This document shows, piece by piece, positions 6,036 to 46,048 of a stretch of DNA of 64,000 nucleotides. The notes under the pieces were generated by a model that worked only from the letters and a program-made list of their open reading frames with translations, searched no databases and was not told where the DNA came from. Position numbers and translations under genes: made by a program. Numbering within the stretch: the first letter of the stretch is position 1; every line of letters begins with the position of its first letter. Origin of the DNA: Phallusia mammillata (taxonomy: Eukaryota). The DNA is taken from assembly GCA_965637545.1 (NCBI GenBank), contig OZ281495.1, forward strand, positions 14,198,001 to 14,262,000, given 5' to 3'.

Positions 6036-8774
6036 CTATACAGAATGAGTGGCAACTGATCCTTGTAGTTTTGTTGCGCTCGTTGAACACTTCGATGTTT
6101 GTTGATTTCCTTCCGTTGATGACCGTGAAACACGTGGCTTCCTTCTGAAGCAAGAAAGCACGTCTTCGCGCAGAGCTGACCGAAAGTTCTTGTCCAAGAA
6201 TCCATATACAATCACGTTTACTAAACTAATAAATGTATTTAATTTGATGTTTGGTGGTGGCGTACATAAGTTTTCTTAGAGCTTTTTAACTCCAAAAATG
6301 ATGTAAACTGTCATTATTATTTGATTCCTTTATGGGATGTTGGATATTACAAAATAGAGTATCGGCCAAAAAGGGATGCACAGTCACCTTTGTTTACACT
6401 CAGTCCTAGTACAGTAAGTCTGTTTTGTTACTTCTGCAACAACTTACCTGTTTGACATGCTCAAATGAATACATACAGTAAGCGGTGCGGAGATTGTTTC
6501 ACACGTCGTTGCGTCAGTGTAGCTCAAAATGACCACAAACAAAAGCGGTACTGAAATAAAAGATGTAAAGAAAAAAGGAGAGCGATCAAATGTATTCGAT
6601 AACCAATTTTGAAACAACATGCATGATAAAAAACTTGTATCATTTTTAATTAATTTGGATGGTTGTTACTCTGACAAAACAAAACTTAAAATTACAAAAT
6701 TTCTCAAATAAAGTTATACGCAATTGATATTACACAAAAGTGAAAATAACTTGATTTATAACACTGATTGTTCAGAATATCTTGAACCTACCCAGGGTAA
6801 TTGTAAAACCAATCTGCATGATAGCCAGCATTTTGTAGACAGATTTTTCCCGTTTGTCAACTTTGTGAGCTTCCCGTCGTTGTGAAATATCACGAGATCG
6901 CTTCTTATACGAACGCAGGATGACGCCAGATGCTACAGTCAAGACAGTCTGAAACAATCAATATACATACATCAAACTGAAAAATATTTTTAGTTTAAGA
7001 AATAAATGCCTTTTCACCTGCTAAAGCAATTATTTTGTTTATTGCTGAGAAAAACTGCTCAAGAGCAGATCATGAGTAGACCAGGTAAAACTATTTGTAG
7101 TATACCAGGTAAAACTATTTCTATTACCCTGGTTAAATTAATTTGACTTGACTTTAAATATGTTTAATTTATGCTCTCACTTTGGGTACGGCAGACATAG
7201 GAAAAAAGTAGATTAAGGCATAACTTTGACTTACCATGATCAAGTAAGGAACAATGAACTGGAACGTAAAGAGCAGAGCAAGTGGTAACAGGTCTGGGTT
7301 TAATGTCAATTCTTTCAGAGTGAGATTGTACAGAAAAGTCGTGTGAGAATATGTGAAGGTGTAGACAGAAGGGAAAAAAGCTAACAAACAAAATAAGCAT
7401 AAGGTTGAGTTGACTTCAATTTAACAATGAAAACAATGCAAAACAACTTACTTGGAATTACAGACGTAAAAACAGCTATTCCCCAAACAGCAACCAACCC
7501 AACATATACATAGCTGTTAAGCTGGCTTCTGTATCTCATTGGCCACCTAATAGCGAAAAAGCGTTGCTGGCCAAGAAATATCAAATGGTACAAGGAGGCA
7601 GTAAAACCGAGAAAGTAGAAAATTCCGCCAGCAATCGATTGTGGCGAGCCTTCTAATTCCAACTCATGTTGATCAAGTTCGTTGGCTGTTGAATTGAGGG
7701 TCCAACTAAAGTTGTAGATGGAAATTCCAAATATCTGGAATCCTGAGTTCAAAATGAGTTTTTCTTTTTACTGACGTCAGTTGGTAAACTTGATCAGTTT
7801 GGAACTTTTGCCCAGATATAAGTTTTAAAAAAACGTATTATATTGTTTAGTTTGTTTTTTCCAGATTGTTATTACACAAAGTGGAGTAATTTAGTCACAA
7901 ATACATACCTCTGTATTAAACTATTTTTTATGAAAATGTGACTTAGATCTTGCTTTTTACCTCTCAGTTTCTATTGCACAACTTGCAACAAAATGTTGAA
8001 TCTGATTTTATGCGAAATATTTTGGATTTGTACACATTAGTTAACATTTATAACAGGCGAAAACGCAACGAAACTAGCTTATGTTGAAAGTTTACTCGTT
8101 ACAGAGGATTGATTACCTGTCAACATGTCAGCTAGTGCCAACGACGCTTTAATCTTGCTGTACGTCCCAGAAAATCCGCTTTTCTTGGCCACGTTGCACC
8201 AGATGACAAAACCATTGCCCAGCAGGACAAGCAGACCCAGTAAAAATATTAGAACCATAAAAATGGATGCCCCGGCCATGTTACATTGTTGACACTCTTT
8301 CAATGCAATATTGGCGCAATCGAATAAAGCGTTCGATGAACAGAACATCGGAAAACCACAAAGTTGTGAAACAATTAGGGCGCTTGGCTTCGCGGCCTCA
8401 AAATCGTCGTTTGTTGTACTTTGGTTGAAGTGCATTAGATCTGGTAATGTAAAAAGCTGGCTCTGGTTGGACGTATTAGGAAATTCTGGCAAGAAATCTC
8501 TGTAATATGGCTGCGAGGAGCTCTCCATTTGTAAATTCAATGCACTTTCCGTTACGATGTTAAATTCTGAACGATTCCAAGGGACAAACAAACTTTCGTT
8601 AGCCGGGATCAACGCGGGTTCCCCGTAAACAGGTTCCTCAATTTGACTTATTATCATTGGGGGTTCCGTCACATATGCAGCTTTTTCATATTGTATTGTA
8701 GGTATTTTATGTAAAATTCTTACAACCATAAAAGGTAGATGGACCACTGTTGGTTCCGGACTTTCGCCACTCAT
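6036..8774 (-). CDS. Rhodopsin-like (class A) orphan GPCR A1 with long Ser/Thr/Pro-rich N-terminus, 6 exons, apparently intact
   Basis: Exons 8774-8117, 7742-7452, 7380-7235, 6948-6792, 6550-6448, 6225-6036 splice in frame. TM1 GN (LLGNGFVI), TM2 SLALAD, TM3 QQRF (DRY position), TM7 NVIVY, helix-8 NFR. Confidence 0.88.
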
Positions 8775-8920
8775 TGTTATTTAACATTTAGGTCAAGCCT
8801 GAAAAATCTTAAAGTTAATTTTTAAGATAAATATTATTAATCTATATAAAGGCATCAAGTAAACAAATAATATGTAAGTTAGATGGCCAACCTGTCCAAT
8901 ATGACCTATGTCTTGTCACC

Positions 8921-8972
8921 AGCTGCACTAATGAGGCTTCGTAAGTAAAAACAGTGTGCACTGTGTACAGCT
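8921..8972 (+). ncRNA. Degenerate type I hammerhead ribozyme remnant
   Basis: AGCTGCA-CTAATGA-GGCTTCGTAAGTA-AAAA-CAGTGTGCACTG-TG-TACAGCT aligns with the intact copy at 40634-40685; core, GAAA and cleavage triplet are mutated. Confidence 0.7.
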
Positions 8973-9064
8973 TAATTATAATTGATCTTTCAAATTTTAT
9001 ACTGTTGGTTTAGATTTAGATTTCTGGATTTAGTCACACGAATAAATGATTGCGATTATCAAGA

Positions 9065-9218
9065 GAACTAAAATCTTGCAAAATAGTCCAACGCATTATC
9101 TGCGATTTTATGATGGGCGGCATCGTCTGCAGTGAACTAGGAACTAAAATTTTGCAAAATAGTCCGACGCATTATGTGCGATTTAATAATGCGCGGCATC
9201 GCGTGCAGTGAACTAGGA
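9065..9218. repeat. Tandem duplication, 2 x 76 bp
   Basis: Units start GAACTAAAAT(C/T)TTGCAAAATAGTCC at 9065 and 9141. Confidence 0.85.
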
Positions 9219-9569
9219 TAGACCAATCATTAACCTTGTCTCGTGCCCTATCAGTTTGCCACCGTCGCCAAATCTTCTTAGTTAAAAACGTTTGACCAAA
9301 AATCGTACATGCAGTGGTTCCGAATCGTTTTTTACAGGCTACGTGCGTACGTGCTTCATTAACAAGTTCCTGTACAGTCTGGAGCAATGGTTCTCAACCT
9401 TTTTTATGGGATCAGCCCTGAAACGTTCATGCAGACCAGCGATCACGGCCTACTCATTTATAAATCATAGTACGCCTGGCCTATTCAAAGAGTAATGCCA
9501 ATTTAGCCGGTCTTTCGACCATTCCCATAAGACAAGGCATAGGCTAAAAAAACCTAGCCTAGAAAAAAT

Positions 9570-9665
9570 CTATCCTTTGGTGGAATTCAAACCCAAGACA
9601 GGATTCTTCCTGGGAACAAGGCGTTTTAGGGCTGTATGACATTATGCCAGATCCAGCAACCGGCT
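9570..9665 (-). mobile_element. Possible tRNA-derived SINE head remnant
   Basis: Minus strand has a B-box-like GGTTTGAATTCC downstream of an A-box-like TAGCCGGTTGCTGG; decayed. Similar weak B-box remnants near 10850 (+) and 58565 (-). Confidence 0.3.
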
Positions 9666-10586
9666 ACTTATAGCTAATTAAATTTATTTAAAATTATAGA
9701 GAATCTTCGCAATTGTGATGTACTCAGCTCACTCCCATAAGCGTCAGCTACGCAATAGAAAAAAGCAAGGAAGATATACTACATGCTTACGCAAAACGTT
9801 ATCAAACAAATCGAACAGAACACTTTTTTGTTATATATATAAGTTTAAATATAGATAGGGTCTGAGGCAACAAATCGTGCAAAGGAACCATACGAGAGTC
9901 GGCTTTGAAGCACTTAACGCAAGAAAGGTCGCTTTGTGCAAAACCCAAGTAAGAAACATAATATAGTTTAAGCAATTAATACATCCAACGCTGACAAAAA
10001 CTTTTTTTGGTCTCAAGTAGTAAATATAAATGTAACTTTGCGTGACATAAGATGCGTTATATTACATTTGGAGATAAAGCACTTTGCTAAATCGAACCGA
10101 ATAAAATTTTAAAAAAAATTACATGTACAGTATGATATTGGTTACCATACAGCACATCCAAAAAATGTCGCAGGCTGATTACCAATGCTATCGATGTTGA
10201 ATATGTCTGAGATAAGCACACAAACATTTCAAAGTTACATGCCTAAAATACAAACAGCGTTCAACCAACATCACAGTCTGTTCATTATTTTTCGTCTTAT
10301 AATATTGCGCACGGCAAAACAGATTTAACTCGCCTTGAATGCTACCCTTAGCTGGTTATACATCGTTTTGCTTTGTGGACTTTTTAACGCAACAAGCAAA
10401 GGCTAAATTTGAGCTTGGATATATGAACGACATTTCCATAGATAAGAATGACATATCCGTTAAAATATTTAACTCGACTTCCCAATGAACTCTGCGTCTT
10501 GTGACATTTATAAACTTTTTATGTCTAAATACATGCTTATGGTTCTGCTGCTGTGTCAAAAACATACTAGCATTATAAACCAATCA

Positions 10587-13500
10587 CTACACAGAATGAG
10601 TGGCAAGACTTCCTTGCAGTTTCGTTGTGTTCGTTGAACATTTCGAAGCTTGTTGATTTGGTCCTGTTGATGTCTTTTGAACTGGTGGGTGTTTTTGAAA
10701 GCAAGACGGCACGCCTTCGACAAAAGCTGACCGAAAATTCTTGTCCATAAATCCGTAAACAATCACGTTCACCAAACTAGAAGATATATTGACGTTACTG
10801 AAGCAACAATACTAAAAACAATATTAGGGCGAGTTGTGGGTTCTAATCTCAGCCCAGCCATTATTACTTTTCCCAAGACACTTGATATACAACAATGCAC
10901 AGTTCAAGGCAACCATGCTTTGCTCCTCTAACCGTTCATAAAAATGAAAAAACAAGTAAGTGGATTATAACTTAACAATTTTCTTTCAAAAAATGTGTCG
11001 TTTAGTGGAAAGTGAAAAGAGCCTATAATGTTTAATGACGACAACATCATGAAAAGATGCCATAATCATAAACTAAGTACATGGGCGGTTCTCATACGAC
11101 TCCCAACATACACACTACAACCTACCTGTTTGACATGCTCAAGTAGACGCATACAATAAGTGGTGTAGAAATTGTCTCACACGTCAATGCACCAGTGTAG
11201 TTCAAGACCACCACGACCAAAAGAGGCACTGCAATAGAAGTGATCAAATAAGCTACAGTTGATGTTTTGTGGGTTTTTTTAACCAGTCTTATGTCTTTGA
11301 ACACTTTCAAACAAAGGCATAAAATACTAACTTCTCAATGTAAATCCCATATTTACTCTAAGAACTTGTTGTTATGTGGTATTCTGGGACCATTTTTCAA
11401 AAAGCCTATAAAATTAGCAAAACTTCCAGCGATGTGATCATCCGCCCAGGTTGACAAATCTAGGCTTAAGGTTAAAGAAAACTACATAGCAACACGTTTA
11501 CAGAGTAAAAATGGGATTTGAATATAGTTTCAAACAGTATAGACAGGCTACCGCACTCCGCAAACAGCATAAAAAGACTGCAGCTCAGTTTGTTAAGCCC
11601 CAGAGCATATTGTGGTGCCACAAATGTCCATAAACCACAGTAAAATATAAGTTTGTACCACCAATGTCTTGTCACCAGTTGCACTATAAAGACCTTACAT
11701 GTCAAAACAGTGTACGGCTCCCCGCAGCAAGTTGATCAGTATATTGTGATTGATCCTTAAATAGCCGCAATTAAATAGCTTAGTTCGCGATTTGGATTAG
11801 AAACTCGCAAATACAAATCAATTGGTTGCCCTACACCAGGGGTGGGCAAAGGAGTTTATGCGGCCCGCCAAATGTTAGTAAATTTTAAAGACAAAGTTAC
11901 CGAGCAACGCTGAATAGTATTATAAGCACAGGCGTAGAGTTTTAAAAAATACCGAAGGTGCGACTTGCCGATACCTTTACCACATGCAGAATCTGTACCA
12001 GTACCATACTTTGGAACTAAACACAGATACGTTTTACATGTTTTAGCCTGTTGTTTCTGCCACGTTATTATGCAAATCGTCACTTGACACAATTTCTTCG
12101 TTCGATAAAAGTAAAAGCTATTCACGTTTTCAATTACAGCCCACTTTGCACTGTTGACGCCAAAACTTTGGTCATTTTGGATCAAGTTTAGGTCGTTGCA
12201 GTACATTGCAAACGGACATTAAACACGGCAATAGAATCGTTACCACAGACCCGCTCGCTTTGTTTAATGTTGGCGCAAGGAATTTATTAACAAAAAAAAA
12301 CGTGGTGTAGCCTATGTTGCAACAAAAGCCTGTTTGTTTTAAAACAATTACAATTGTAGCGTTTCAACCAATGTTTCTCCAAACAAAGTGACAACGAACG
12401 TATTTGCACATAGCTGAAAATATACTATGTTAATATTTTGGGCTAAATCAGGGGTGCACAACCTGTGGTCGTACGGCCATATACGGCCGCGGAGACGAGT
12501 TTGTGCGGCCGTGACCTTGTATGAAAAAATATATATACTGACTGCCGTGACGTGACTAAAAGTGTTTTGCCAAATATTTCGATTTTCAAACTGCTAAAAC
12601 GAGATTTCGTGAGACTGGCCATATGCGCAAGGCTTTTTATCCGCTTATTGTGTGCAACAATGCGAAAAGAACAGGCACTGCAATCGTCACAATATAGATT
12701 ATGACGTCTTAAACAGTTATCTCCGTTCAGCTAAACTTATACACCTGAGAATTTTAGGCGGCTTTAAATGATATATATATATATATATATGATATAAATC
12801 TAATTTTTTACACCAGTTATTTTTAAAAACAAGTAAGAGGCCGTTGGTGAAATACAATGCGGCCCCATAAAATTATGAACTTTTGAATGTGGCCCTTGCA
12901 CTGAAAAGTTTGCCCATCCCTGCCCTATACCTACCCAGAGTTATTGTAAAACCAATCTGCATGATGGCCAGCATTTTGTACACAGCTGTTTCCCGTTTTT
13001 CTATTTTATGTGCTTCCTGTCGCTGAGAAAGATCACGGGATCCCTTCTTATACGAACGCAGGATGGCACCAGAAGCAACGGTTAAAGCAGTCTAAAGTCA
13101 ACAGTAAAAATTCTAGTAAAATGTAAATATACGTAAGGCCACAGACCATTATATATTGTTAATATGCATTGCTAAAAAGTTAATAATGACGCAATTATCA
13201 TTAAGTTTCAAATACGTTTCCAATTTTCTTCATTTGCAAAAAATAGCTCAAAACGCACTTTGAGAATACGACCTACCATAATCACGTAAGGAACAATAAA
13301 TAGAAATGTAAAAATCAGCGCAAGTGGCCCCAGGTCTTGACTTAATGTGATTTCTTTCATGGTAATATTAAACAGAAATATTGGGTGGGAGTATGTGTAG
13401 GTGTAGACGGAAGGGAAAAAAGCTAAAAAAAGAAGATAATAGTTACAAAAAACGTCAATAAACCTTCATTTACGACACAAAATTAACTTACTTGGAACCA

Positions 13501-15000
13501 CTGACATCAAAACAGCCATTCCCCAAACAGTGATCAACCCCACGTATACATTTCTGTTCCGTTGGCTCCGATATCGCATTGGCCACTTGATAGCGCAAAA
13601 GCGCTGCTGGCCAAGAAATATCAAATGGTACAGGGAAGCAGTAAAACCGAAAACGTGAAAAATTCCGCCTGCAATCGATTGTGGTGAACCCCGTAACTGT
13701 AACTGATGTCGATCAAGTTCGTTTGCTGTTGAATTCAACGTCCAGCTAAAGTTGTAGATGGCGATTCCAAAAATCTGAATTCCTGCAAGCAAAATGTGAT
13801 TTGGAATCCCCTACACGAGAGAAAAAAACTTAGTTGAATACGAACTTAATGTAATATTAATTTGCATGTGTTTTTAGTTTAAAACGAATTGATTTAATCA
13901 AAGTTAGTCGCTGATCTGTTAAAATAAGTTAAGCACGTTTGAAGACAATTTTGTATCCGTCCTTTTAATATTTAGGCACTGAGATCTAATTTATGTTTTT
14001 GTAAAGCAATATTTTATTTATTTATTTTTCATTTAGAATTAAAAGTATAAAAAACCTGACTCTTTAGGTTTACATGCCTAAACTTTGACTACATTTGATC
14101 ATGATGCGAATCTCTTAATGTCACAAGGTAAAGTTTAAAGGTCATTCGTTTCATATCATCACAATCGACGTTACCTGTCAACATGTCAGCAACTGCTAAC
14201 GACGCTTTAATCTTGCTGTACGTCCCAGAAAATCCGCTCTTCTTTGTCATGTTACACCAGATAACAAATCCATTGCCCATCACGATGAGTAGACCCAGCA
14301 AAACTATTAGAGCCACAAAAATGGACGCCCCGGCCATGTTACATTGCTGGCATGCTTTCAATGCAATGTTGGCACAATCATATAAAGCGTTCGATGAACA
14401 AAAGCTTGGAAAACCACAAAGCTGTGAAGTAGGGGTGCTTGGTGTAATCGCCTTCATCACGCTGGTTGTGGTTAAGTTGGAATGCAGAAAAACTGACAAT
14501 GGCGAGGACTCCAGCACACTCGTGGAGGTATAATTATCTGTTATTTGTGTGTAATTGCGGTTAGGTAGCCAGGAATCGTCTAGTTCCTCGGGTCGGCCGC
14601 TGTTGAACGTGCTTAAATTGGATGGCAATAAAGTTTCATTGGACTGATTCAAGTAATTTCCATTTTGTAAATCCAATGCACTTTCTGTCGCAATGTTCAA
14701 TCTTGAACTATTTTCAGGGACGGTTGTAGTTTCGTTGACTGGAAATACACGCTGGACAAATTCAATTGGTATTGGTGGAGCTACAAGTTCGGGTTTCAGA
14801 GGTACGAAATAGACAGGTGTTTCGAAACGATCAATGACCATTGAGTTGAATATGGTAGGGCGAAACGTTGCTGCGGCAGTCATAGTAAAGACTTCATTAA
14901 AGAATTCAGGTTCGGGTGATACGAAGGGCTGCGGACTGACGACTCTATCTATAAGAAAAGGTTCTGCAACCCTAGGCCGTTCTGGACTTTCGCCGCTCAT
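10587..15000 (-). CDS. Rhodopsin-like orphan GPCR A2 (tandem paralog of A1), 6 exons, apparently intact
   Basis: Exons 15000-14175, 13782-13492, 13422-13277, 13091-12935, 11228-11126, 10776-10587; same intron positions and phases as A1; starts MSGESPE and ends THSV like A1. Confidence 0.88.
11677..11729 (+). ncRNA. Strongly degenerate hammerhead remnant in A2 intron 4
   Basis: AGTTGCA-CTATAAA-GACCTTACATGTC-AAAA-CAGTG..., preceded by the same TGTCTTGTCACC flank as the 8921 copy. Confidence 0.55.
11837..12922. mobile_element. hAT-type MITE with a nested truncated second MITE (about 12449-12852)
   Basis: TIR CAGGGGTGGGCAAA...TTTGCCCATCCCTG; TSD ccctacac/ccctatac. The inner segment starting CAGGGGTGCACAACC matches the 39619-40111 element, including its (TA)n tract. 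Confidence 0.85.
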
Positions 15001-28155: not shown

Positions 28156-29486
28156 GTTCTCAAGCGGCTTCAAACCACTGTTTAGAAACTCCGTTGATTA
28201 GTTGTCAACACTGCAGGTAATCTTAAGTCTTTATTTTTGAAACTTAGTTTTAAACTGTTTCAATCTGTAGCATTCTTGGTGTTAAAAACTTTTTTGTTTT
28301 GTTTGCAGTTTTACATCCGCTTTCTTCTTATTGTTTTTCATCGCATTTGTTGGATTTTTCGTGGTCATCTCAAATATTTTTGTTATTGCAATAGTTTGCA
28401 AAACAAAACCCTCCGACAGAAGAAAACTGGACTACGTCAAGGCCTCATTGGCTGTGTCCGATGTCATTAACGGTTGGTTGGACACTTTTTTATCACATTG
28501 CAATTGCTTTATTAAACCACCGATCCGAGAATTCATGTGGATTGACATTACTAATGTTGAAGATAATCAACATTAAAACCAATTGACACTTGCTTTTTCT
28601 GTATTTACAGGGTTGTGTGCACTGTTTGTGACTCTCCGGTACGGAGTAATTTTTTTGTATTCGTCGGTTTCCGAAATGCTGGAAATCGAGGTTCAATCAA
28701 AAGGGAGTATCGCGGCAACCATTTTTGGATTTGCTAACTATACAGCATACTCAGTGTGCAACTACCACTTGCTGTACATGAGCATACAAAGATTTGCTGC
28801 TGTTAATTATCCTTTCAAGTATAAAGCACTGCCTGTCCGGTCCGTGTATATTCATATCATTTTTGTCTGGTGTTTTTCAATAGCGTGGGGCCTTTCACCG
28901 CGTGCGTTATGATTGCATATTAGGGATAATAGCTCATATTTAATTTGCTTTGGTTTACACAGTGTACATGTACGATGACGCGGAATTTCAAATGTTGGGC
29001 TTCGCTTTTCAATACTATCCACATGGTACGTTAGCGAAAGAGACAAGACTTTTAGATGAACTTTTGTTTTTGGCGTTTTATTTTATCCCTTTCGCGTTGG
29101 TGGTAAGTTTTTCTGTTTATCTTCGTCTATATTTGACTCTAATACACACAACATTCTTCAGGCAACACTGACCAGCATAACGGCTCGACCAGTTTTACTT
29201 GTAACCGTTTTGACCAGCGTGGGTTTGGTATCTTGTGAGCTTGTTTCTACGTCGTATTTTATCTGTTACACTCTTCTTGTTTCCTCCGGGTAAGTGCGAC
29301 CTTAGAATTGACTTTCCTTATAACATCGTTTACTATTATAATCCTTGCTTACTGGTTTGCAGTTTGATAAACGTGATGGTGTACAGCGCTTATGATGACT
29401 TGTTTCAAAAGAATATGAAGAAATTTTGGAACAAAAAAGAATCGCAAAAACTTTCAAGATCAAGTATCACAACAGTTACCCATTGA
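28156..29486 (+). pseudogene. GPCR alpha-1: start codon deleted and internal in-frame deletion of ICL3/TM6a
   Basis: Versus alpha-3/alpha-4, about 239 bp including the ATG is lost between GTTCT microhomologies; 229 bp (43 codons plus an intron) is lost at GCTCGA|CCAGTT (29188). Confidence 0.8.
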
Positions 29487-31067: not shown

Positions 31068-32680
31068 TCAAGCTTGACTTGTGCATGTGCATAATTTGTT
31101 CCAGTATTTCTTCACGTTGTTTTGAAATTGGTGGTCGAATGCACTGTATGCCACCACGTTTACCAAGCTGAGAAAAACAACAAAGGGTAAAAACGCCGAA
31201 ACACGTAGGCTATTTCTGTTTATCATACTTTACCCTGTGGATACTGAAAAACAGTAGCAGATGAAATATGACGATGAGATAAAATCACAAGGCACCAAGT
31301 TCAAACTGGTAAAGATGGACAAAGTTACCACGGGAACTGTGGAATGGAATTTACCAAAACTTTATGTGGTTATATACGTTTTTCATGTTCAAAACAAATA
31401 ACAGATTCTCTTTCGTTACTTTACCTATCCCCACAGATAAGCCAAGCACCATAAACGTTGTGACTTTCAGCAAATGTATCTCCTTGTTTAAAGTATTCTC
31501 TGTGTGAGCTTGCATTAAATCTCTAGACTTTCTACGAAGTTTCCAGACCATTTGAGCCGTTATGCAAGTCAATGTTGTCTGCAAATTTTGACGTATAGTC
31601 AGAGTCAAATATATATAGTTTAAGATTACATTCAAACTTACCACCAACACGTAGGGAATAAGGAAAAAGGCGATAAACACAAAAAATTGTAAAGGTCTCG
31701 ATTGTACAATATCAACGTATAATGAACCAAACGGAAGATATTGAAAAGCGATGCCCAAAACTTGAAATTTTAAGTCAGCGTAAATATAAGCTGCAAAAAA
31801 ACAAATTAGAAATCAGAAAAAATGAGCTGCTATCACTATAGTAACACGTATAACTTAAACTTACCCGGTGCTGAACTAAACACTATTGAAAAGCACCAGA
31901 CCAATACCAGGTGAAAATATACGGAGCGGACTGATTGTGCTTTATACTTGAAAGGATACTTAACAGCAGCAAACCTTTGCACGCTCATGTACAGTAGGTG
32001 GTAAATGGTTAATGTGTAGGTTGAGAAGTGCACAATTCCTCCAATGGTTGCTTCAACGGTACCTCGGGATTTGGTTTCAATTTCAAGCATCTCCAAAACC
32101 GACGAATGTAAAAATGTTGCCCCGTACCTCACAGTCACACACAGAACATCCAAACCTGGCAAAACAAAGGACAAGTTTTGTGTAAAAGACTTGTTGCTTA
32201 TTACTACCAATATCAGGTAACAAAATACACAAGGTCAGTATAATGGTATGTGTCCGAGGTTTTTTGATAACATACACCTCCTCTTAACCAAAGTAATTTT
32301 TAACCAACAAACCACTTATGATATCAGCCATAGCAAGTGAAGCTTTGACGTAGTCCAGCTTTCTTCTGTCACTTGGTTTTGTAATCAAAGTAACCACTAA
32401 GACCAACAAATTGGAGACGGCTACAGAAAATCCGAGAATTGTAAGACAAAACAGTAAGAAAAATGCCGACGTAAAACTGTAAAAAAAATATGAAAATAAA
32501 ACAAACCCGCAATAACTCACAAGGTAACAGTTAAGAAAGATGAGTAAAACCGATAGTATAAACTTACTTGCAGTATTGACAGTCGATGAGTGTGGTTTGA
32601 AGGCATTGATTCGAGGCTGAAAGAGAACAAAAAGCAGGTAGAGCACAAAACGTAGAAAAATTAACAGTCGAATTCTGCAT
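31068..32680 (-). CDS. Rhodopsin-like orphan GPCR beta-1, 7 exons, apparently intact
   Basis: Exons 32680-32568, 32476-32313, 32155-31865, 31790-31642, 31578-31425, about 31337-31235, about 31167-31068; MQNSTVNFSTFCALPAFCSLSASNQCLQTTLIDCQYC...VQRF...LVPCD...NVVAY. Confidence 0.82.
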
Positions 32681-33085: not shown

Positions 33086-33732
33086 AAGACTTCTTTTCAT
33101 GCTCATGTACAGCAAGTGGTAGGTGCACACTGAATAGGCTGTATAGTTCACAACCCCTAAAATGGTTGTCCCGATACTCCCTCTTGTTTGAAATTCGATT
33201 TCCAGCATTTCGGAAACCAACGAATACAAAAAGATTACTCCGTACCGGAGAGTTACAAACAGGGCATCCAAGCCTGGCAATTACAGAACAAACGTGTGAA
33301 TTAGTTTAAATGTTCATTATCTTTAACATAGTTAATGTCAATGCATTTAAATAAATATGTTTGACTAACCGTTGATAACATCTGCTATAGCCAATGAAGC
33401 CCTAGCGTAGTCCAGTTTTCTTCTTTCACATGGTTTTGTTGTACAAACTATTACAATCACCAACAGATTTGAGATGACCACGGAAAATCCAACAAATGCG
33501 ATGGAAACAAAAAGAAGAAGGCGGATGAAATACTGCAAACATACAAAAAAAATTATTTGACATTAAAGTGTTAACAAAATAAAACTAAGATTAAAGAATA
33601 AAAACTTCAATAAGGTTACCTGCAGTGTTGACAGCTAATCAACGGAGTTTCTAAACACTGATTTGAAGCCGCTTGAAAACAGTAGGCAGGCAAAGCACAT
33701 GTGAAAGTAATATTACCAGTTGAGTTGTCCAT
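33086..33732 (-). pseudogene. GPCR alpha-2: frameshifted and truncated at end of TM3
   Basis: ATG 33732; 1-bp loss in exon 2 (TTTCCATC vs TTTTTCATC); homology stops after ...YMSM and joins the beta-1 upstream region. Confidence 0.82.
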
Positions 33733-34840: not shown

Positions 34841-35072
34841 AACCATTTTGGGGTTTGCCTATATAGTGTATTGCAGCGTGGTTTTTGACTCTTAACCTGC
34901 TTTTGATTGAATTCCGGGTGTTTGACGCACTGGGCTTCGTCAAGTGACTTAGTTACAAATTGGATTTGAATAAAATTAATTGAACGACGAGTGTAAGTTT
35001 ATAAACAACGCGTGTATTTTGACGAGCTATCGTGTAAACGTAGGATTTGTAACAGAGTGAAAAACAAAGACT

Positions 35073-36658
35073 ATGGATAACTCAACTGGTAATATTACTC
35101 TCGCATGTGCTTTGCCTGCCTACTGTTCTCAAGCGGCTTCGAACCACTGTTTAGAAACTCCTTTGATTAGCTGTCAACACTGCAGGTAACCTTAAGCCTC
35201 TATTTTTGGATCTTACTTTTAAACTGTTTCAATCTGTATCATCTTTGGAGTCAAAAACATTTTTGCTTGTTTGTTTGCAGTTTTACATCCGCCTTCTTCT
35301 TATTGTTTTTCATCCCATTTGTTGGATTTTCCGTGGTCATCTCAAATCTTTTGGTTATTGCAATAGTTTGTAAAGCAAAACCCTCCGACAGAAGAAAAGT
35401 GGACTACGTCAAGGCTTCATTGGCTGTGTCAGATGTCATTAACGGTTGGTCGGAAATTTATTTGTCACATTGCAATTGCTTTACTAAACCACCAATCCTA
35501 GAAGTTAAGTAGATTGACGTTACCAATGTTTTGGATAATCAGCATTGAAACTACTTGACATGTTTATTCTGTAATTGCCAGGCTTGGATGCCCTGTTTGT
35601 GACTTTCCGGTACGGAGTAATCTTTTTGTATTCGTCGGTTTCCGAAATGCTGGAAATCGAAGTTCAATCAAAAGGGAGTATCGAGGCAACCATTTTGGGG
35701 GTTGTGAACTATACAGCATACTCAGTGTGCAACTACCACTTGCTGTACATGAGCATGCAAAGATTTGCTGCTGTCAATTATCCATTCAAGTATAATGCAC
35801 TGCCTGTCCGGTCCGTGTATATTCATCTTATATTTGTCTGGTGCTTTTCAATAGCGTGGGGACTTTCACCGGGTGCGTTATGATTGCAAATTAGGGATAA
35901 TACTTATATTTATTTTGATTTGTTTTTTACAGTGTACTTCTACAATGACTCAGAATTTCAAATGTTCGGCATCGCTTTTCAATTTCTACCACAGGGTACG
36001 TTAGAGACAGATCTTTCACAAACAAGAACTTTAGAAGATTTTGTGTTTGTGGCTTTTTATTTTGTCCCATTTGTGTTGGTGGTAAGTTTTTCTGTGTAAC
36101 TTTGTCTATATTTGAGTCTAATACACACAACATTCTTCAGGCAACACTGACCTGCATAACATCTCGAGTTGCTTGGAATCAACGCAAAAACTTTAGGCAC
36201 ATAAGACAGCTTAACACGGTGTCCAATTTTAAAAAAGAAATGCATTTGTTGAAAATGACAGCCTTCATGGTACTTGGTTGTTCTGTGGGAATCGGTAAAT
36301 ATAAAAAATCCTTTTTATTTTCCTACTGCTCTTCCTCCGGTGTTAAATTCACCAAGCTAAACTATTTAACGCTACAATCTACAACTTTTTGCAGTACCAG
36401 TTTTACTTGTAACCGTTTTGACCAGTGTGGGTTTGGTACCTTGTGAGCTTGTCTCTCCGTCCTATTTTATCTGTTACACTCTTCTTGTTTCCTCAGGGTA
36501 AGTGCAATCTTAGAATTGAGATTCCTCATAACATCGTTTACTATTATAATCAATGTTTACTGGTTTGCAGTTTGATAAACGTGATGGTGTACAGCGCTTA
36601 TGATGAATCGTTTCAAAACAGTGTGAAGAAAATGTGGAACAAAAAAGAATCGCAGTGA
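35073..36658 (+). CDS. Rhodopsin-like orphan GPCR alpha-3, 7 exons, 353 aa, the only intact alpha copy
   Basis: Exons 35073-35185, 35281-35444, 35582-35872, 35933-36081, 36141-36294, 36395-36497, 36571-36658 total 1062 nt, all GT-AG and in frame. Confidence 0.87.
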
Positions 36659-39433: not shown

Positions 39434-40499
39434 CAGTGGTTCTTAACCGGGGTTCGATCGAACCCCAGGGCTTCGGCAAAGCTGAATCAGGGGTTCGACG
39501 AAGGTCTTTTTGAAGTAAAATACAAATACTCGTTTTGGTCAAACTTTGGGGTCTATAGTCGCTAAAAAATGGCATTTCTATTTGCCAAATATCAAAACGC
39601 TGGAAGCTTACACTAAGGCAGGGGTGCACACCCTGCGGCCGTACGGCCGTATGCCGCCGCAGAGTCGAGTTGGTGCGGCCGTAAACATGTTTACTAAAAT
39701 ATATGTACAGGCGGCGGTGACTTAAATAAAACTCTTTTGCTAAATATTTTAATTTTTAAACTGCTTTAACAGTTTTTGTGGTACTAAAAAGAGTATTACC
39801 AGCCTAATAACCATATGCGTCAGCCTTTTTGTACGCCTATTGTGTGCAAACAATGCGAACAAAACAGGTACCACAAGCATCACAATATAGATTATGACAT
39901 CATAAACACTTAAGACCGATCTCCGCGTTGTGCAGCTCAATCTGTGCACCAAGCCAGAAATTAATCTGGGCTTATTGGGCTCTATTAATTTATTATATAT
40001 ATATATGATATAAACCAAGTATTTTCAAACAAAAGAGCAGGTAAATGGCCGCCGTTGGTGAAACAAGAATCTGCGATGCGGCCGTCCCAGCAAAAAGGCT
40101 GTGCACCCCTGAACTGTAGTTTTATTTTCTTTTTAAACGTAACAAAGAGCACTGTGCGCGTTGTTCTCAAGCAGAAAAACAACGAAATTTTGTTGGCAGC
40201 AAAAACTTATTACTTCATCTTTTTCATGTTTGTGTACAGATGTTAAAAATACAATGCTTCATTTTGGTAAAAACTAAAAATTACCGGAATTAATGCAATC
40301 TGGAAACAAGATGCTTGTATTATTATGTCAGAATTTAACAAAAGGACAAACAATAACTGTTGACACTACGTTTGAACAAAATCTAATTACGACCCAGCAA
40401 ACAAAATGGTTTAAAACCTAGGATGTAACTGTGGGGTTCGACCAAAGGCTGAAGAATGTCGTGGGGGTTCGGCCGTTATGAAAAGGTTAAGAACCACTG
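39434..40499. mobile_element. hAT-type MITE with nested complete MITE (39619-40111)
   Basis: Outer TIR CAGTGGTTCTTAACC...GGTTAAGAACCACTG, perfect TSD ttctagca; inner TIR CAGGGGTGCACA...TGTGCACCCCTG without a clear TSD. Confidence 0.9.
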
Positions 40500-40633
40500 T
40501 TCTAGCATATCGGAAAACATCGTAATATTCATTAATATCATAACATATTCACACAAATATATTCGATGTGCCCTTGAAATTTACATGTATTATGCATAAC
40601 ACCACCAATTTAGCAAAAAAAATTAATATGATA

Positions 40634-40685
40634 AGCTGCAGACAGTGCACACTGTTTCGACCTATAAGGTCTCATCAGTGCAGCT
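40634..40685 (-). ncRNA. Structurally complete type I hammerhead ribozyme in a 100-bp insertion (40632-40731) with 13-bp TSD
   Basis: Minus-strand RNA AGCUGCA-CUGAUGA-GACC(UUAUA)GGUC-GAAA-CAGU(GUGC)ACUG-UC|UGCAGCU: perfect core, 7-bp stem I, 4-bp stem II, stem III, GUC triplet. Flanked by AAAATTAATATGA at 40619-40631 and 40732-40744; insert absent at the paralogous site near 27660. Confidence 0.92.
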
Positions 40686-41382
40686 GATGACGAGAGATCG
40701 GCCGCATTGGCTAGTGTAGCCATTCAACGGCAAAATTAATATGAATTTCGAAAATCGACTCCAAAACATTCGATGTACTGTGACCATATCATTTACCGCA
40801 TCTACTTGAATTTTACATGTTTTAAGAACTATTGCACGATGTACTAGCAATTCTGGCTTATTACAATTACCCGATCAAAGATTTATAACGAACATTAATA
40901 ATCCATCGAAACTCAACGAAAATTAGATAATGTGCGCTGGGCTCATATAAGTTATTACCGCATTAACTTAAATTTTACATATGTAATAATACAAAATCAA
41001 AAATTTATAACTATAACATCGAAAATCAACCTAAAACCATAAAAAAAACATGCATATTTACACAACCATGAACTATTGAGACAAGTCTACATTATTTATA
41101 GGGGGCTGGTATTTCTTATAAAGTTGCATCGAGTGCAGAAGGATAACAATTTTGGGGTTAGCCTATACATATAAACTATAGTTTAGTGCAGCGTGGTTCT
41201 TAACCTGCGTTTGATTGAACTCTGGGTATTCGACGCACTGGGCTTCAAGTGACTTAGCTACAAATTTGGTTTGAATAAAATTAATTTAACGATCAGTGTA
41301 AGTTTATGAACAACGCTGTGAATTTTTGACATGCTAGTAGGGTGTAAACGTATGATTTGTGACAGAGTAAAACACAAAGACT

Positions 41383-42300
41383 ATGGACAACTTAACTGGT
41401 AATATTACTCCCGCATGTGCTTTGCCTGCCTACTGTTCTCAAGCGGCTTCAAACCACTGTTTAGAAACTCCGTTGATTAGCTGTCAATACTGCAGGTAAC
41501 CTTATTCAAGTCTTGATTTTTGGATCTTAGTTTTAAACTGTTTCAATCTGTACCATTTTTTGTGTAAAAAAACTTTTCCTGGTTTGTTTGCAGTTTTACA
41601 TCCGCTTTCTTCTTACTGTTTTTCATCCCATTTGTTGGATTTTCCGTGGTCATCTCGAATTTTTTGGTCATTGCAATAGTTTGTAAAACAAAACCCTCCG
41701 ACAGAAGAAAACTGGACTACGTCAAGGCTTCATTGGCTGTGTCAGATATCATTAACGATTGGTCGGACATTTATTTATCACATTGCAATTGGTTTATTAA
41801 ACCACCAATCATAGAAGTGAAGTATAGATTGACGTTACCAATGTTTTGGATAATCAACATTAAAACTCATTCACACGTTTGTTCTGTGATTGACAGGCTT
41901 GGATGCCCTGTTTGTGACTTTCCGGTACGGAGCGATTTTTTTGCATTCGTCGGTTTCCGAAATGCTGGAAATCGAAGTTCAATCAAAAGGGAGTATCGAG
42001 GCAACCATTTTGGGATTTGTGAACTTTACAGCCTACTCAGTGTGCACCTACCACTTGCTGTACATGAGCATGCAAAGATTTGCTGCTGTTAATTATCCTT
42101 TCAAATATAAAGCACTGTCTGCCCGGTCCGTGTATATTCACCTTATATTTGTCTGGTGCTTTTCAATAGCGTGGGGACTTTCACCGGGTGCGTTATGATT
42201 GCAAATTAGGGATAATACTTATATTTATTTTGATTTGTTTTTTACAGTGTACTTCTACAATGACTCAGAATTTCAAATGTTCGGCATCGCTTTTCAATGA
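41383..42300 (+). pseudogene. GPCR alpha-4: exon-2 donor mutated (GT>AT) and truncated in ECL2
   Basis: AACG|ATTGGT vs AACG|GTTGGT in other copies; homology ends at TTTCAA-TGA (42300), joined to the beta-2 3' flank. Confidence 0.82.
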
Positions 42301-42456
42301 ATATACAATCACAAAACTTTTAGTACATGTCATTGTTCAGAGTGGAAGCATCAGATTTATCGCTTCGTTCAACCAGTCATGGTAGGCGACTTCGCCCTTT
42401 TCCCAAACACCAACATAACGGGACGAAGCAACAGTAGTAGAGCGTTGCAACAAATG

Positions 42457-44074
42457 TCAACAATTAACCGGTGATATATTCAAGCTTGACTGTTTGCATG
42501 TGCATAATTTGTTCCAGTATTTCTTGAAGTTGTTTTGAAATTGATGGTCGAATGCACTGTACGCCATCACGTTTACCAAGCTGAGTAAAACAACATAGGT
42601 AAAAACGCCGAAACACGTAGGCTATTTCTGTTTATCATACTTTACCCTGTGGATACTGAAAGACAGTAGCAGATGAAATAGGACGATGAGATAAAATCAC
42701 AAGGCACCAAGTCCAAACTGGTTAACATGGACAAAGTTACCACAGGAACTGTGAATAGAATTTACTAAAACTTTATGTGATTATACCTTTTTCATGTTTC
42801 AAACACACAACAGGTCAACTTTTGTTATTTTACCTATCCCCACAGATAAGCCAAGCACCATGAACGTTGTAATTTTCAGCAAATGTATCTCCTTGTTCAA
42901 AGTACACTGTGTGTGAGCTTGCCTTAAGTCTCTAGACTTTCTACGAAGTTTCCAGACCATTCGAGCCGTTATGCAAGTCAATGTTGTCTGCAAATTATGA
43001 CGTATAGTTAGAGTAAAATATATTGCTTCAGACTACATTCAAACTTACCACCAACACGTAGGGAATAAGGAAAAAGGCGATAAACACAAAAAATTGTAAA
43101 GGTCTCGATTGTACAATATCAATGTATAATGAACCAAACGGAAGATATTGAAAAGCGATGCCCAAAACTTGAAATTTTAAGTCAGCGTAAATATAAGCTG
43201 CAAATCAGAAATCGGAAAAATTGAGCTGCTATCACCATAGTAAAATGTATAACTCAAACTCACCCGGTGCTGAACCAAACACTATTGAAAAGCACCAGAC
43301 CAATATCAGGTGAAAATGTACGGATCGGACTGATTGTGCTTTATACCTGAAAGGGTATTTTACAGCAGCAAACCTTTGCATGCTCATGTACAGTAGGTGG
43401 TAAATGGTTAATGTGTAGGTTGAGAAATGCACTATCCCTCCAATGGTTGCTTCAACAGTACCTCGGGATTTGGTTTCAATTTCAAGCATCTCCAAAACCG
43501 ACGAATGTAAAAATGTTGCACCGTATCTGACAGTCACAAACAGAACATCTAAACCTGGCAAAACAAAGAACAAGGTAAGTGTAAAAGACTCGTTGCTGAC
43601 TATCTTTTACCAGGTAACAAAATACACAAGGCTGGTATAACGGCATGTTATTTTCCTAACTTATTCCAATTATTGATCAAAGTAATTTTTAACCAACAAA
43701 CCACTAATGATATCAGTCATAGCAAGTGAAGCTTTGACGTAGTCCAATTTTCTTCTGTCACTTGGTTTTGTAATCAACGTAACCAGTAAGACCAACAAAT
43801 TTGAGAAGGCTACAGAAAATCCAAGAATTGCAAGGCAAAACAGTAAGAAAAATGCCGACGTAAAACTATAAAAAAAAATATGAAAATAAAACAAACTCGC
43901 AATAACTCACAAGGAAACAGTTAAAACAAAAAAATGAGTAAAACCGGTGGTATAAAGTTACCTGCAGTATTGACAGTCGATGAGTGTGGTTTGAAGGCAT
44001 TGATTTGAGGCTGAACGAGAACAAAAAGCAGGAAGAGCACAAAACGAAGAAAAAATTACAGTCAAATTCCGCAT
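42457..44074 (-). CDS. Rhodopsin-like orphan GPCR beta-2, 7 exons, apparently intact
   Basis: ATG 44074 (MRNLTVIFSSFCALPAFCSRSASNQCLQTTLIDCQYC); same exon structure as beta-1; a small indel changes the C-terminal tail (..CTCKQSSLNISPVNC*). Confidence 0.8.
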
Positions 44075-44441
44075 TTCTTACGAGATTTCTTATCGACGCA
44101 AAGCTAACGTATGTCTAACTCGTGTATAACAGGCAAGAACTATACCTCAAGCAAACCGAATTAGCTCCAGTTTTCGGGAAGATTAAACAGACAATTGTCG
44201 AAAAAGAACTGCTTATTTGTTACCCTTTGTTTGGAAACAATAAGATATTAATAATTTATCAGTGATCCAGTTTTAACAGTATTTTTCAGTGTATGTTTTC
44301 AGGAGTGGGAAAATTTCACTCATATGGTTTATCAAACACTTTGAAATAGAACATAAAGTAATGACATTTTGTGTATTTAATTACAATATCTGGTAAAACA
44401 AATACAAGACAAATTTATAAAACACGGTTTTGCGACAAACG

Positions 44442-46048
44442 TCAATGGTTAACTGAAGTAATATTTGATCTTGTAAGTTTCTGTGGCCTTACTTTGTTCC
44501 AAAGTTTCTTCAGATTATTTTGAAACGACTGATCATAAGCACTGTACACCATCACGTTTATCAAACTGCAAACCAGTAAACATTGATTATAATAGTAAAC
44601 GATGTCATACGAAACGTCAATTCTATAGTCGCACTTACCCAGTGGAAATAGCAAGAGTGTAACAGACAAAATACGACGAGGAGACAAGCTCACAAGGTAC
44701 CAAACCCACGCTGGTCAAAACAGTTACAGTTACGACCAGTGGCGTATCTAGGATCGTTTTTAGGGGGGGGGGGGGGGGGGGGGGGGGCAATAATAAGAAA
44801 TATTTTGCGACACCTGGCGGCGAAAAATGCGCCACCTTGCGGCAGAAAATGCGCCATCTGGCGGTAGACTGTGTAGACCTCTATGTTACTAAACTCGCAA
44901 TATCAACTAAATGCTGGTTAGCCTAAGGCCCTGTGAAGCCCTTACTCTTGCTGTAAGTAATGAACGTATAGTCACGATTCGATCGTATACAATACATGTA
45001 ACACTTTTTAACACTCGACACAGTTGTTTCTAACAGTGGTTGCCTCTTAATCATATTGTGAAATATCTTCACTTGTATGAGTGTGACATAACAAAGCTAT
45101 TATAAAATCCATTGTGACGTCATACACGCAGTTGGACGCCAAGTGGCCTAGATTGGCATTGTTTATTGAGATGTGTGACGAGCATCAATGCGTTACGCAC
45201 ATTGCTATTTACAGTTTTGTCTGAAAGTGCAAGATTCAATACTAAAACAGCCGTTCAAAATTTCTTGAGGGGCGGGCATGGCAACCATAACGCACCTGCT
45301 GAAGAACCACACGCTACTGAAAAGAACCAGACTAAAATGAGGTGAACATATACGGACCGGACAGGGAGTGCGTTATACTTGAAAGGATACTTAACAGCAG
45401 CAAATCTTTGCATGCTCATGTACAGCAACTGGTAGGTGCACACTGAGTAGGCTGTGAAGTTCACAACCCCCAAAATGGTTGCCTCGATACTCCCTCTTGA
45501 TAGAAATTCGATTTCCAGCATTTCAGAAACCGACGAATACAGGAAAATTACTCCGTACCGGACAGTCACAAACAGTGCGTCTAACCCTGTAAATACAGAA
45601 TAAACAAGTGTCAATTAGTTTTAATGTTGATTATCTTCGACATTGGTGATGTCAATATATTTAATTGAATAAATGACTAACCGTTGATTACATCTGCTAT
45701 AGCCAATGAATTAAGCCCTGACGTAGTCAACTTTTCTTCTGTCAGACGTTTTTGTTGTACAAACTACTGCAATAACCAACAGATTTAAGATGACAACGGA
45801 AAATCCAACAAATGCGATGAAAAACAGTAAGAAGAAAGCTGATGTAATACTGCAAACATACAAGAAAACGTTATTTGACATAAAAAGTGTTAACAGTTCA
45901 AAACTAAGATTAAAGAACAAAAAACTTGAATAAGGTTACCTGTAGTATTGACAGCTAATCAACGGAGTTTTAAAGCAGTGGTTTGAAGCCGCTTGAGAAC
46001 AGTAGGCAAATCACATGTGAAAGTAATATTAACAGTTGAGTTGTCCAT
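44442..46048 (-). pseudogene. GPCR alpha-5: frameshifts plus loss of ECL2-TM5-ICL3 exons, replaced by repeat DNA
   Basis: 4-bp deletion in exon 1 (TTGCCTACTG), 4-bp insertion giving TAA at end of exon 2, and 44738-45285 occupied by a CAGTGGCGTATCTAGG element where exons 4-5 should be. Confidence 0.82.
44738..45285. mobile_element. Partial non-autonomous DNA element with (G)25 tract and three 22-bp-spaced GC-rich subterminal repeats
   Basis: 5' end CAGTGGCGTATCTAGG; G-run 44763-44787; repeats at 44807, 44829, 44851; right boundary approximate, no 3' TIR found. Confidence 0.55.

Follow-up and report, generated by a model that had tools for sequence, protein, structure and literature searches.

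A tandem cluster of orphan rhodopsin-type receptor genes with a predicted three-disulfide extracellular cap in the ascidian Phallusia mammillata

A stretch of 64,000 nucleotides from Phallusia mammillata (contig OZ281495.1, positions 14,198,001 to 14,262,000; referred to as the window) was analyzed and found to carry a tandem cluster of five intact GPCR genes (A1, A2, alpha3, beta1 and beta2) and four broken copies. The cluster is likely to be a birth-and-death array of an orphan rhodopsin-type (class A, 7tm_1) receptor family bearing a three-disulfide cap. The disulfide bond between TM3 and extracellular loop 2 (ECL2) is one of the most constant features of class A receptors, which count as some of the best studied proteins, and ascidians form the vertebrates' sister group. 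A lineage-wide exchange of this bond for a juxtamembrane cap would represent an alternative construction of the extracellular face.

The spacing C-x5-C-x7-C-x7-C-x2-C, which the original prediction had described as common to the A and B genes, was detected seven times in a six-frame translation of the window (in A1, A2, beta1, the alpha2 fragment, alpha3, the alpha4 fragment and beta2) versus a mean of 0.0 in 100 shuffles. The module comprised about 27 residues with the consensus L-C-G-[FVL]-P-x-F-C-S-x2-A-x3-C-x-N-x-[TS]-L-x2-C-x2-C and ended 1-3 residues ahead of TM1. No Pfam family was matched by the module region of a relative (P0019:60-125), and a profile of 32 module sequences gave a best E of only 0.64 against the PDB (a TNFR21 fragment). 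Exactly one Cys was present in ECL3 of each intact gene. Position 3.25 was occupied by Ser in the A genes and by Ala in the B genes, and ECL2 was free of Cys. The DRY position read QQR in the A genes, MQR in alpha3 and beta2, VQR in beta1 and IQR in the alpha1 fragment, and the NPxxY position read NVIVY, NVMVY, NVVAY or NVMAY. All these substitutions had been anticipated, those at 3.25 and in ECL2 being borne out in the five intact models and those of the two motifs in the window copies. The core residues N1.50, D2.50, R3.50, W4.50, P5.50, P6.50, N7.49 and Y7.53 were kept, and D3.49, W6.48, P7.50 and Y5.58 were replaced in the genes of the window.

Assignment to class A was based on profile and structure comparisons, with Pfam scores of the window genes obtained from single exons and full-length scores from relatives. 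The TM2-TM4 exon of A2 alone matched 7tm_1 with an E of 1.7e-8 (34.7 bits; cut-off 30.5), and the corresponding exon of A1 scored 24.9 bits against the same cut-off. The full-length relatives P0019, P0035, P0074 and P0098 matched 7tm_1 with 49-70 bits over profile positions 1-260. A family profile matched the beta2AR, D2, A2A, NPFF1, apelin and CB1/2 receptors (1e-18 to 6e-24), in each case beginning with TM1. An AlphaFold2 model of P0019 (pTM 0.79) displayed seven helices and H8, and the pLDDT of module residues 81-100 was 95-98. Foldseek and VIA-align assigned this model to the class A fold; the best VIA-align matches were 5-HT2A, beta1AR and A1R (Z 26, rmsd 2.9-3.5 Å over 281-287 residues). 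Position 3.49, which is Gln in the window genes, was Gln or Glu in the relatives with occasional exceptions, and position 7.50 was Val, Phe or Ile, never Pro. The Cys3.25-ECL2 disulfide is near-universal in class A, but it does not define the class because the bond is likewise absent from MECA and MRGPR receptors.

Like the amine, adenosine and cannabinoid receptors of class A, the family has the 7TM fold (VIA-align Z about 26, rmsd about 3 Å, about 280 residues), a full-length 7tm_1 match and conserved core residues. Unlike them, it is devoid of the Cys3.25-ECL2 bond, carries the five-Cys module directly before TM1, and has Val/Phe at 7.50, a residue other than Trp at 6.48 and Gln/Glu at 3.49. 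Melanocortin receptors and other members of the MECA cluster are also without the canonical TM3-ECL2 disulfide, and MC4R possesses a disulfide from the N-terminus to ECL3/TM7 and an intra-ECL3 bond. The family resembles MC4R in having its extracellular staples displaced towards the TM1/TM6/TM7 side, the bonds being predicted here from co-variation. Melanocortin receptors have retained DRY and an NPxxY-type motif and have neither a five-Cys module nor two intramodule bonds; their sequence similarity to the family was no better than that of the amine receptors. In chemokine, AT1, apelin and P2Y receptors, an N-terminus-ECL3 disulfide, whose second Cys lies where ECL3 meets TM7, exists in addition to the canonical TM3-ECL2 bond. 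The family shares with these a Cys just before TM1 whose partner, as predicted by co-variation, would lie in ECL3, whereas they have a single N-terminal Cys instead of a knotted module. As the canonical bond is absent here, the likeness to chemokine, AT1 and P2Y receptors is one of analogy, not of membership. The structure of CCR5 (5uiw) aligned to the P0019 model from residue 68, with its N-terminal segment overlaying the module region according to the VIA-align ranges.

A HMMER search of 1.84 billion proteins yielded 149 relatives at E<=1e-3. The module was conserved family-wide: within a set of 150 proteins the exact spacing was present in 99, and only Cys1 was missing in 20. All named relatives were ascidian (Ciona, Clavelina, Phallusia), and no orthologue outside ascidians was found among the HMMER relatives and named matches; the family is thus large and, to date, known from ascidians alone. 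The absence of any known domain match for the module and the contradictory automatic names of the relatives (relaxin, octopamine and LPA receptor among them) agree with the proposal of an uncharacterised, lineage-expanded receptor class. The ectodomains of the family included short tails, long glycosylated tails and arrays of 5-9 Sushi repeats, the last being fused to the same five-Cys module in Clavelina relatives (Pfam). The cap, predicted to be stapled to ECL3, would be kept beneath ectodomains of very different kinds. Most of the ascidian rhodopsin-type receptors that count as 'unclassifiable' belong to the family. Since names now span relaxin to LPA receptors, recognition of the hallmarks should improve annotation; it should also correct gene models in which the small module exon is missing, and aid deorphanisation.

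It is possible, if somewhat doubtful, that the genes belong to the clades of the Ciona-specific neuropeptide receptors Ci-LF-R or Ci-YFV-R, and that the Cys module has simply gone unremarked. In Shiraishi et al. 2019 (PMC6475428), Ci-LF-Rs are presented as urochordate-only class A receptors, and receptors for Ci-LF and Ci-YFV were deorphanised in Ciona. By description, the two groups agree in being class A clades confined to urochordates and in their distant vertebrate neighbours; Ci-LF-Rs are given there as 21-26% identical to cannabinoid, adenosine and adrenergic receptors, the neighbours also retrieved by the family profile. Ci-LF-1-R corresponds to KH.C4.122 on chromosome 4, the Ciona family member ci0100154142 is located on chr_04q, and one 8.45-Mb contig carries several of the Ciona members. 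Against this, no database member of the family bears a Ci-LF-R or Ci-YFV-R name, and cysteines, DRY and NPxxY are not mentioned in the text of PMC6475428. Even if true, the identity would cover only some of the Ciona paralogs and would leave the module unexplained. A literature search for the KH identifiers of the Ci-LF and Ci-YFV receptors retrieved no other paper citing them. If the families were the same, the ligands would be short tunicate-specific peptides.

The canonical Cys3.25-ECL2 pair was missing family-wide among the aligned relatives. Position 3.25 was Ser, Ala or Ile and never Cys in the five window genes and every aligned relative, and ECL2 contained no Cys in 43 of 52 rows and one in each of the others. 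In 36 of 36 full-length members, Cys1 and the ECL3 Cys shared one state, present or absent, and an additional genomic case (L007) was concordant, with Ser in place of Cys1 and no Cys in ECL3. Cys3 and Cys4 were lost together in two lineages, P0016/P0152 and P0145. The number of extracellular Cys was mostly even (6 or 4) and odd in a few relatives. Together, the Cys1/ECL3 co-variation and the joint loss of Cys3 and Cys4 lead to the predicted bonds C1–ECL3, C2–C5 and C3–C4, and with the mostly even Cys counts and the high pLDDT of the module in the P0019 model they support the originally proposed lid of six Cys and three disulfides. The assignment of C2–C5 and C3–C4 is based on two lineages, one of which is P0145, a doubtful gene model that violates the Cys1/ECL3 rule. 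The co-variation thus provides a concrete map of candidate bonds which is cheap to test.

A different Cys pairing is unlikely. The bonds might all be formed within the module, with one Cys free or bound to another chain; or else the ECL3 Cys might lack a partner or be palmitoylation-irrelevant, shared ancestry then accounting for the Cys1/ECL3 correlation. On the best tree, six coincident changes of Cys1 and ECL3 Cys were counted, of which only two co-losses were forced by strongly supported (starred) branches; a strict sign test on co-losses was unable to reach significance, and four of the nine 'neither' rows among the 36 formed one clade. Odd Cys counts in some members and single-Cys losses in exon-1 fragments (e.g., P0138, P0139) point in the same direction. 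However, none of the 36 rows was discordant, nor was L007, and opposite Cys1/ECL3 states were found in the sister pairs P0129 and P0141 (support 99) and P0058 and P0098, and between P0015 and its close relatives, the A genes of the window. In addition, the five module Cys are an odd number and require a sixth partner.

With the pairing C1–ECL3, C2–C5 and C3–C4, the bond between Cys1 and the ECL3 Cys would tie the N-terminus to the TM6-TM7 loop, and the other two bonds would knot the module itself. The three bonds together would form a rigid cap over the extracellular face, which may stand in structurally for the TM3-ECL2 bond that was lost and serve as a constant adaptor joining widely differing ectodomains to the 7TM core. 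Signalling through G proteins is plausible because the core residues from N1.50 to Y7.53 are kept, despite the replacement of D3.49, W6.48, P7.50 and Y5.58. In a far-reaching version, which is speculative and to be doubted, the cap would be an undescribed, autonomous trans-loop disulfide cap that took the place of the TM3-ECL2 bond when a superfamily arose which numbers dozens of genes in each genome and is known to date from ascidians alone. This superfamily would supply the otherwise missing repertoire of chemosensory and tunicate-specific peptide receptors, including class A receptors with Sushi arrays, and wherever Cys1 and the ECL3 Cys were jointly lost, as happened repeatedly, the subfamily would be one with the cap released from the helical bundle. 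If so, these losses would be a natural experiment in lid gating.

The intact gene models had complete frames and GT-AG borders at every intron, 28 introns in all. A1 (8774..6036, minus strand) consisted of six exons (8774-8117, 7742-7452, 7380-7235, 6948-6792, 6550-6448 and 6225-6036) encoding 514 aa, with GT..AG at all introns and no internal stop. In its protein, a long N-terminal tail rich in Ser, Thr and Asn was followed by the module and the 7TM region, and the sequence ended with ...THSV; the module (8360-8283, aa 139-164) continued directly into TM1 on one exon, and the ECL3 Cys codon was located at 6503-6501 (aa 434, TTCE). A2 (15000..10587, minus strand) encoded 570 aa in six exons (15000-14175, 13782-13492, 13422-13277, 13091-12935, 11228-11126 and 10776-10587), with the module at 14418-14341 (aa 195-220) and the ECL3 Cys codon at 11181-11179 (aa 490, LTCE). 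The predicted single ECL3 Cys per gene was therefore correct for all five intact genes, but the motif LTCE given for both A genes had to be corrected to TTCE in A1.

The intact B genes each had seven exons. Beta1 (32680..31068, minus strand; 357 aa) comprised exons 32680-32568, 32476-32313, 32155-31865, 31790-31642, 31578-31425, 31336-31234 and 31167-31068, with the module at 32647-32570 and the ECL3 Cys codon at 31289-31287 (VPCD). Alpha3 (35073..36658, plus strand; 353 aa) comprised exons 35073-35185, 35281-35444, 35582-35872, 35933-36081, 36141-36294, 36395-36497 and 36571-36658, with the module at 35106-35183 and the ECL3 Cys codon at 36442-36444 (VPCE). Beta2 (44074..42457, minus strand; about 365 aa) comprised exons 44074-43962, 43865-43702, 43554-43264, 43197-43049, 42987-42834, 42748-42646 and 42580-42457, with the module at 44041-43964 and the ECL3 Cys codon at 42701-42699 (VPCD). 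Five introns were common to the A and B genes in position and phase, as had been claimed: two of phase 1 that follow TM2 and TM4, one of phase 0 where TM5 ends, one of phase 1 ahead of V-P in TM6 and one of phase 2 ahead of xVNV in TM7. The B genes contained one additional phase-2 intron between module and TM1. The A and B genes are one family, as judged from the shared module and introns and from their position within a single ascidian clade set of the tree.

Four of the seven B-type copies were truncated or frameshifted pseudogenes. In alpha1 (28156..29447, plus strand), homology began in the middle of exon 1, Cys1 and Cys2 were missing and exon 5 was deleted. Alpha2 (33732..33092, minus strand) was a fragment of exons 1-3 that stopped past TM3, with an intact module at 33699-33622. 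Alpha4 (41383..42297, plus strand; module 41416-41493) retained exons 1-3 plus 16 exon-4 codons and was cut at a duplication junction. Alpha5 (46048..44481, minus strand) had a frameshift in exon 1 and Tyr in place of Cys5; neither exon 4 nor exon 5 was detected in it. With four of nine copies visibly broken, and with A1 and B exons not found in the (tiny) RNA-labelled runs, the window copies might be taken for decaying relics instead of working receptor genes. This is very improbable, as five copies have complete frames with canonical splice sites at 28 of 28 introns, dN/dS between window paralogs was 0.26-0.32, the hallmark residues are all kept, and ESTs exist for Ciona members.

Least credible is a derivation of the module from an LGR/relaxin-type hinge, which would make the family a degenerate offshoot of the LDLa/LGR-like cluster of Ciona: several members are automatically named 'relaxin receptor 2', FSHR, TSHR and LGR4 were alignable from model residues 49-70 (VIA-align), and Kamesh et al. 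2008 list 14 Ciona receptors that have short N-termini as 'Unclassified LGR-like', but no relaxin-family or LGR chain was among the best 60 PDB sequence matches, Pfam detected neither LRR nor LDLa in seven members (including P0019, P0035, P0074, P0098 and the Sushi-bearing ones), and one Ciona LDLa-GPCR sequence from the supplement of that study had no such module before TM1. In the same study, two recognisable members of the family, ci0100154142 and ci0100142144, were catalogued as unclassified 'Other Rhodopsins', with GPR50 and HTR1A (about 1e-6) and not LGR8 as best human matches. The sequences given there display the module in ci0100154142 and a TM7 of the SLVNV form in both; module, ECL3 Cys and missing disulfide are not described there for the two. 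Compared to the 2008 listing, the module, the ECL3 Cys, the missing disulfide, the size of the family and its Sushi-bearing members are new.

Gene models were built by local tblastn, one exon at a time, and each junction was inspected. The window is free of N runs and has a G+C content of approximately 37%. The module, a stretch of five cysteines (Cys1 to Cys5 in order) with the spacing C-x5-C-x7-C-x7-C-x2-C before TM1, was recovered seven times with exact spacing by six-frame search and not once in 100 shuffles of the window; all seven matches fell at places named in the original prediction. Five complete models were obtained, with GT..AG introns throughout and a reading frame open from ATG to stop. 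These were the A-type genes A1 (6036-8774, minus strand, 6 exons, 514 aa) and A2 (10587-15000, minus strand, 6 exons, 570 aa), and the B-type genes alpha3 (35073-36658, plus strand, 7 exons, 353 aa), beta1 (31068-32680, minus strand, 7 exons, 357 aa) and beta2 (42457-44074, minus strand, 7 exons, approximately 365 aa). The A and B genes had been predicted to share five intron positions and phases, and this holds in the gene models. The B genes carry one additional phase-2 intron, and their start codon and module lie on an exon 1 of 37 codons. A small open frame over the TM7 region of alpha3 proved to be an open intron; the splice choice previously made for this gene, which places VPCE in ECL3, agrees with the splice sites as well as with the A genes. 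The exon-joined models served as input for the alignment, for tree building, for the residue tables and for the dN/dS calculation, and database searches were performed per exon.

Four further B-type copies were found to be broken. Alpha1 begins in the middle of exon 1 and has no exon 5, alpha2 ends past TM3, exon 4 of alpha4 is cut at a duplication junction, and in alpha5 exon 1 is frameshifted and exons 4 and 5 are missing. The B cluster represents a segmental duplication, with 89.8% identity between 30930-32887 and 42343-44280. The cluster (28156-46136) arose from a duplicated unit composed of alpha(+), beta(-) and alpha(-), and its segments 33092-33820 and 45405-46136 are 86% identical. The proportion of broken copies (4 of 7) resembles the birth-and-death pattern of chemoreceptor clusters. 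Purifying selection acts on the intact paralogs, since dN/dS between them is 0.26-0.32.

The TM2-TM4 exon matched the Pfam family 7tm_1. A first profile was constructed from the module and TM1-TM2 of A1, A2 and two metagenomic exon-1 ORFs, and was searched with HMMER against 1.84 billion representative proteins, resulting in 149 proteins at E<=1e-3. The exact five-cysteine spacing was present in 99 of 150 collected proteins, Cys1 alone was missing in 20, and in a subgroup of relatives loop 2 was lengthened by 2-3 residues (x9-x10 instead of x7). All named matches were ascidian (Ciona intestinalis, C. savignyi, Clavelina lepadiformis and Phallusia mammillata). A word-index search with exon 1 of A2 retrieved just two exon-1 ORFs, both metagenomic. 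The same type of search, a weak test, gave no exon-sized relatives of the alpha3 TM2-TM4 exon, and a B-type counterpart elsewhere was not found by it. With a 20-sequence family profile, members scored E<=1e-71 and the next protein, a fish TAAR, 1e-30. The receptor family is real, large and so far known from ascidians alone. Its members bear the database names relaxin receptor 2, TAAR9-like, octopamine receptor beta-like, adenosine A3-like, apelin receptor-like, LPA receptor 3-like, tachykinin-like receptor and uncharacterized; these names contradict each other and are thus automatic best-hit labels. An origin from LGR/relaxin receptors was rejected, as Pfam detected neither LRR nor LDLa domains in seven members and no chain of a relaxin-family receptor or LGR occurred among the 60 best PDB sequence matches.

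Against PDB sequences, the family profile matched the beta2AR, D2, A2A, NPFF1, apelin and CB1/2 receptors (1e-18 to 6e-24); every match began at TM1, and the module was never covered. Comparison of the module with described domains, a check proposed with the original prediction, yielded no family in Pfam for the module alone and no PDB match for the module profile (best E 0.64). The receptors are class A GPCRs with a novel juxtamembrane cap. In four Clavelina lepadiformis relatives (P0056, P0061, P0086 and P0097), all of them 7tm_1 receptors, the ectodomain contains 5-9 Sushi/CCP repeats, which a module variant with a loop 2 of ten instead of seven residues links to the helices; their database names were taken from SVEP1/CSMD3. 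An N-x-S/T glycosylation sequon between Cys3 and Cys4 was observed in 65 of 119 modules of relatives and is absent from the window genes.

The residue tables confirmed the hallmarks claimed for the window genes. Each of the five intact genes has a single ECL3 cysteine (in the contexts TTCE, LTCE, VPCE or VPCD), ECL2 of the intact genes is free of cysteine, and position 3.25, from which the canonical TM3-ECL2 disulfide starts, is occupied by Ser in the A genes and by Ala in the B genes. The DRY site is replaced by QQR, MQR or VQR in intact genes and by IQR in the alpha1 fragment, and NPxxY by NVxxY. The C-termini of A-type receptors follow the pattern S/T-x-V/I (THSV, VSAI, STTV or TKI; A1 6036-6050, A2 10587-10601, and the relatives P0019, P0025, P0074 and P0129) and resemble PDZ-binding tails of class I, an ending that is absent from the B-type genes.

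All full-length relatives were aligned with the five window models, and the key columns were read from this alignment. Cys3.25 was absent from every aligned member. Cys1 and the ECL3 cysteine were both present in 27 rows and both absent in 9, so that all 36 non-redundant complete rows were concordant. The ECL3 site was excluded before a tree was calculated from the 7TM columns; in this tree, each of the two cysteines changed six times, on identical branches every time. Opposite states were found between the sisters P0129 and P0141 (support 99), P0058 and P0098, and P0015 and the window A genes. A seventh concordant case was provided by a metagenomic contig (L007), which has Ser for Cys1 and, in its ECL3 exon, IPYTHI at the family's Cys site. 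A sign test could not reach significance, because a stricter count takes only two of the six pairs, the remaining branches lacking strong support. The co-variation of Cys1 and the ECL3 cysteine is accordingly regarded as strong but not conclusive. In P0016/P0152, Cys3 and Cys4 are replaced in register while Cys1, Cys2, Cys5 and the ECL3 cysteine are kept, and both Cys3 and Cys4 are likewise replaced in P0145. Most rows contain six or four extracellular cysteines. The simplest bond map suggested by these alignment columns would be C1-ECL3, C2-C5 and C3-C4. The idea of a cap that includes the ECL3 cysteine, put forward in the original prediction, thus gains support from the co-variation.

The closest outside relative of A1 and A2 (52% identity; L001 10001-13758, L002 4648-8309) has Phe in place of Cys1. 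It lies on metagenomic contigs of 12-32 kb with exons 1-3 only, corresponding to long introns or a truncated gene; its ECL3 exon was not found on L001 or L002-L004, and the concordance count leaves this relative out. On L005, L006 and L008, this exon was not found or the contig was too short to show it. Within the four-cysteine clade, which lost Cys1 and the ECL3 cysteine, R3.50 is gone in the Ciona proteins P0106/P0187 and P0148, where YTF and DC occupy the place of the expected xQR, and is kept in P0096.

The module is separated from TM1 by 1-3 residues. In the proposed mechanism, the N-terminus would be held against the TM6-TM7 loop by a bond between C1 and the ECL3 cysteine, and the two inner module bonds would stiffen the cap. 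Together, the cap bonds may stabilise the extracellular face and substitute for the absent TM3-ECL2 bond, and the cap could serve as a constant socket beneath variable ectodomains. The core residues R3.50, N7.49, Y7.53, D2.50, P5.50 and P6.50 are kept, which makes G-protein signalling by the family plausible from its sequences. Q3.49, L/I6.48, V7.50 and the absence of Y5.58 suggest an altered switch behaviour.

The Ciona protein P0019, a family member, was modelled with AlphaFold2 from a 92-sequence alignment; the model had a pTM of 0.79 and a module pLDDT of 95-98, with ECL2 folded as a hairpin. Structure search with VIA-align returned generic class A receptors as PDB neighbours (Z ~26). Subfamily typing by this search was rejected, as amine, adenosine and opioid receptors tied. 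In CCR5, an N-terminal cysteine is bonded to ECL3. The VIA-align alignment of CCR5 starts at model residue 68, over the module region; only ranges were compared, and the likeness is taken as a hint.

Two Ciona members, ci0100154142 and ci0100142144, were listed by Kamesh et al. 2008 (PMC2396169) as 'Other Rhodopsins', with best human matches of ~1e-6 and existing ESTs. The module is visible in the sequence file of that study for ci0100154142, and the cysteines are not discussed in the paper. So far, the family is catalogued only as unclassifiable, and a literature search found no paper describing the five-cysteine module. In Shiraishi et al. 2019 (PMC6475428), the peptides Ci-LF and Ci-YFV were identified as ligands of class A receptors that occur only in urochordates. 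The vertebrate neighbours described for these receptors are those of the present family, and an overlap, compared by description only, is a possibility.

Adjoining A1, open frames at 5199-5677 (+) resemble by eye the C-terminal membrane part of acyltransferase-3/nose-resistant-to-fluoxetine proteins; the short pieces gave no match in Pfam. In small RNA-labelled runs of this species (16-34 million letters), the A1 and B exons were not covered, a result that carries no weight for or against expression. When four small runs were compared with 5900-11400, a short repeat at 9407-9470 alone was covered. It occurred in contigs of all four runs, with unrelated flanks every time, and probably represents a repeat that is dispersed or transcribed. 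An open frame of 289 aa (24355-25224, plus strand), located in the interval from the A to the B receptor genes, encodes zinc fingers of the C2H2 type (Pfam zf-C2H2 and related families).
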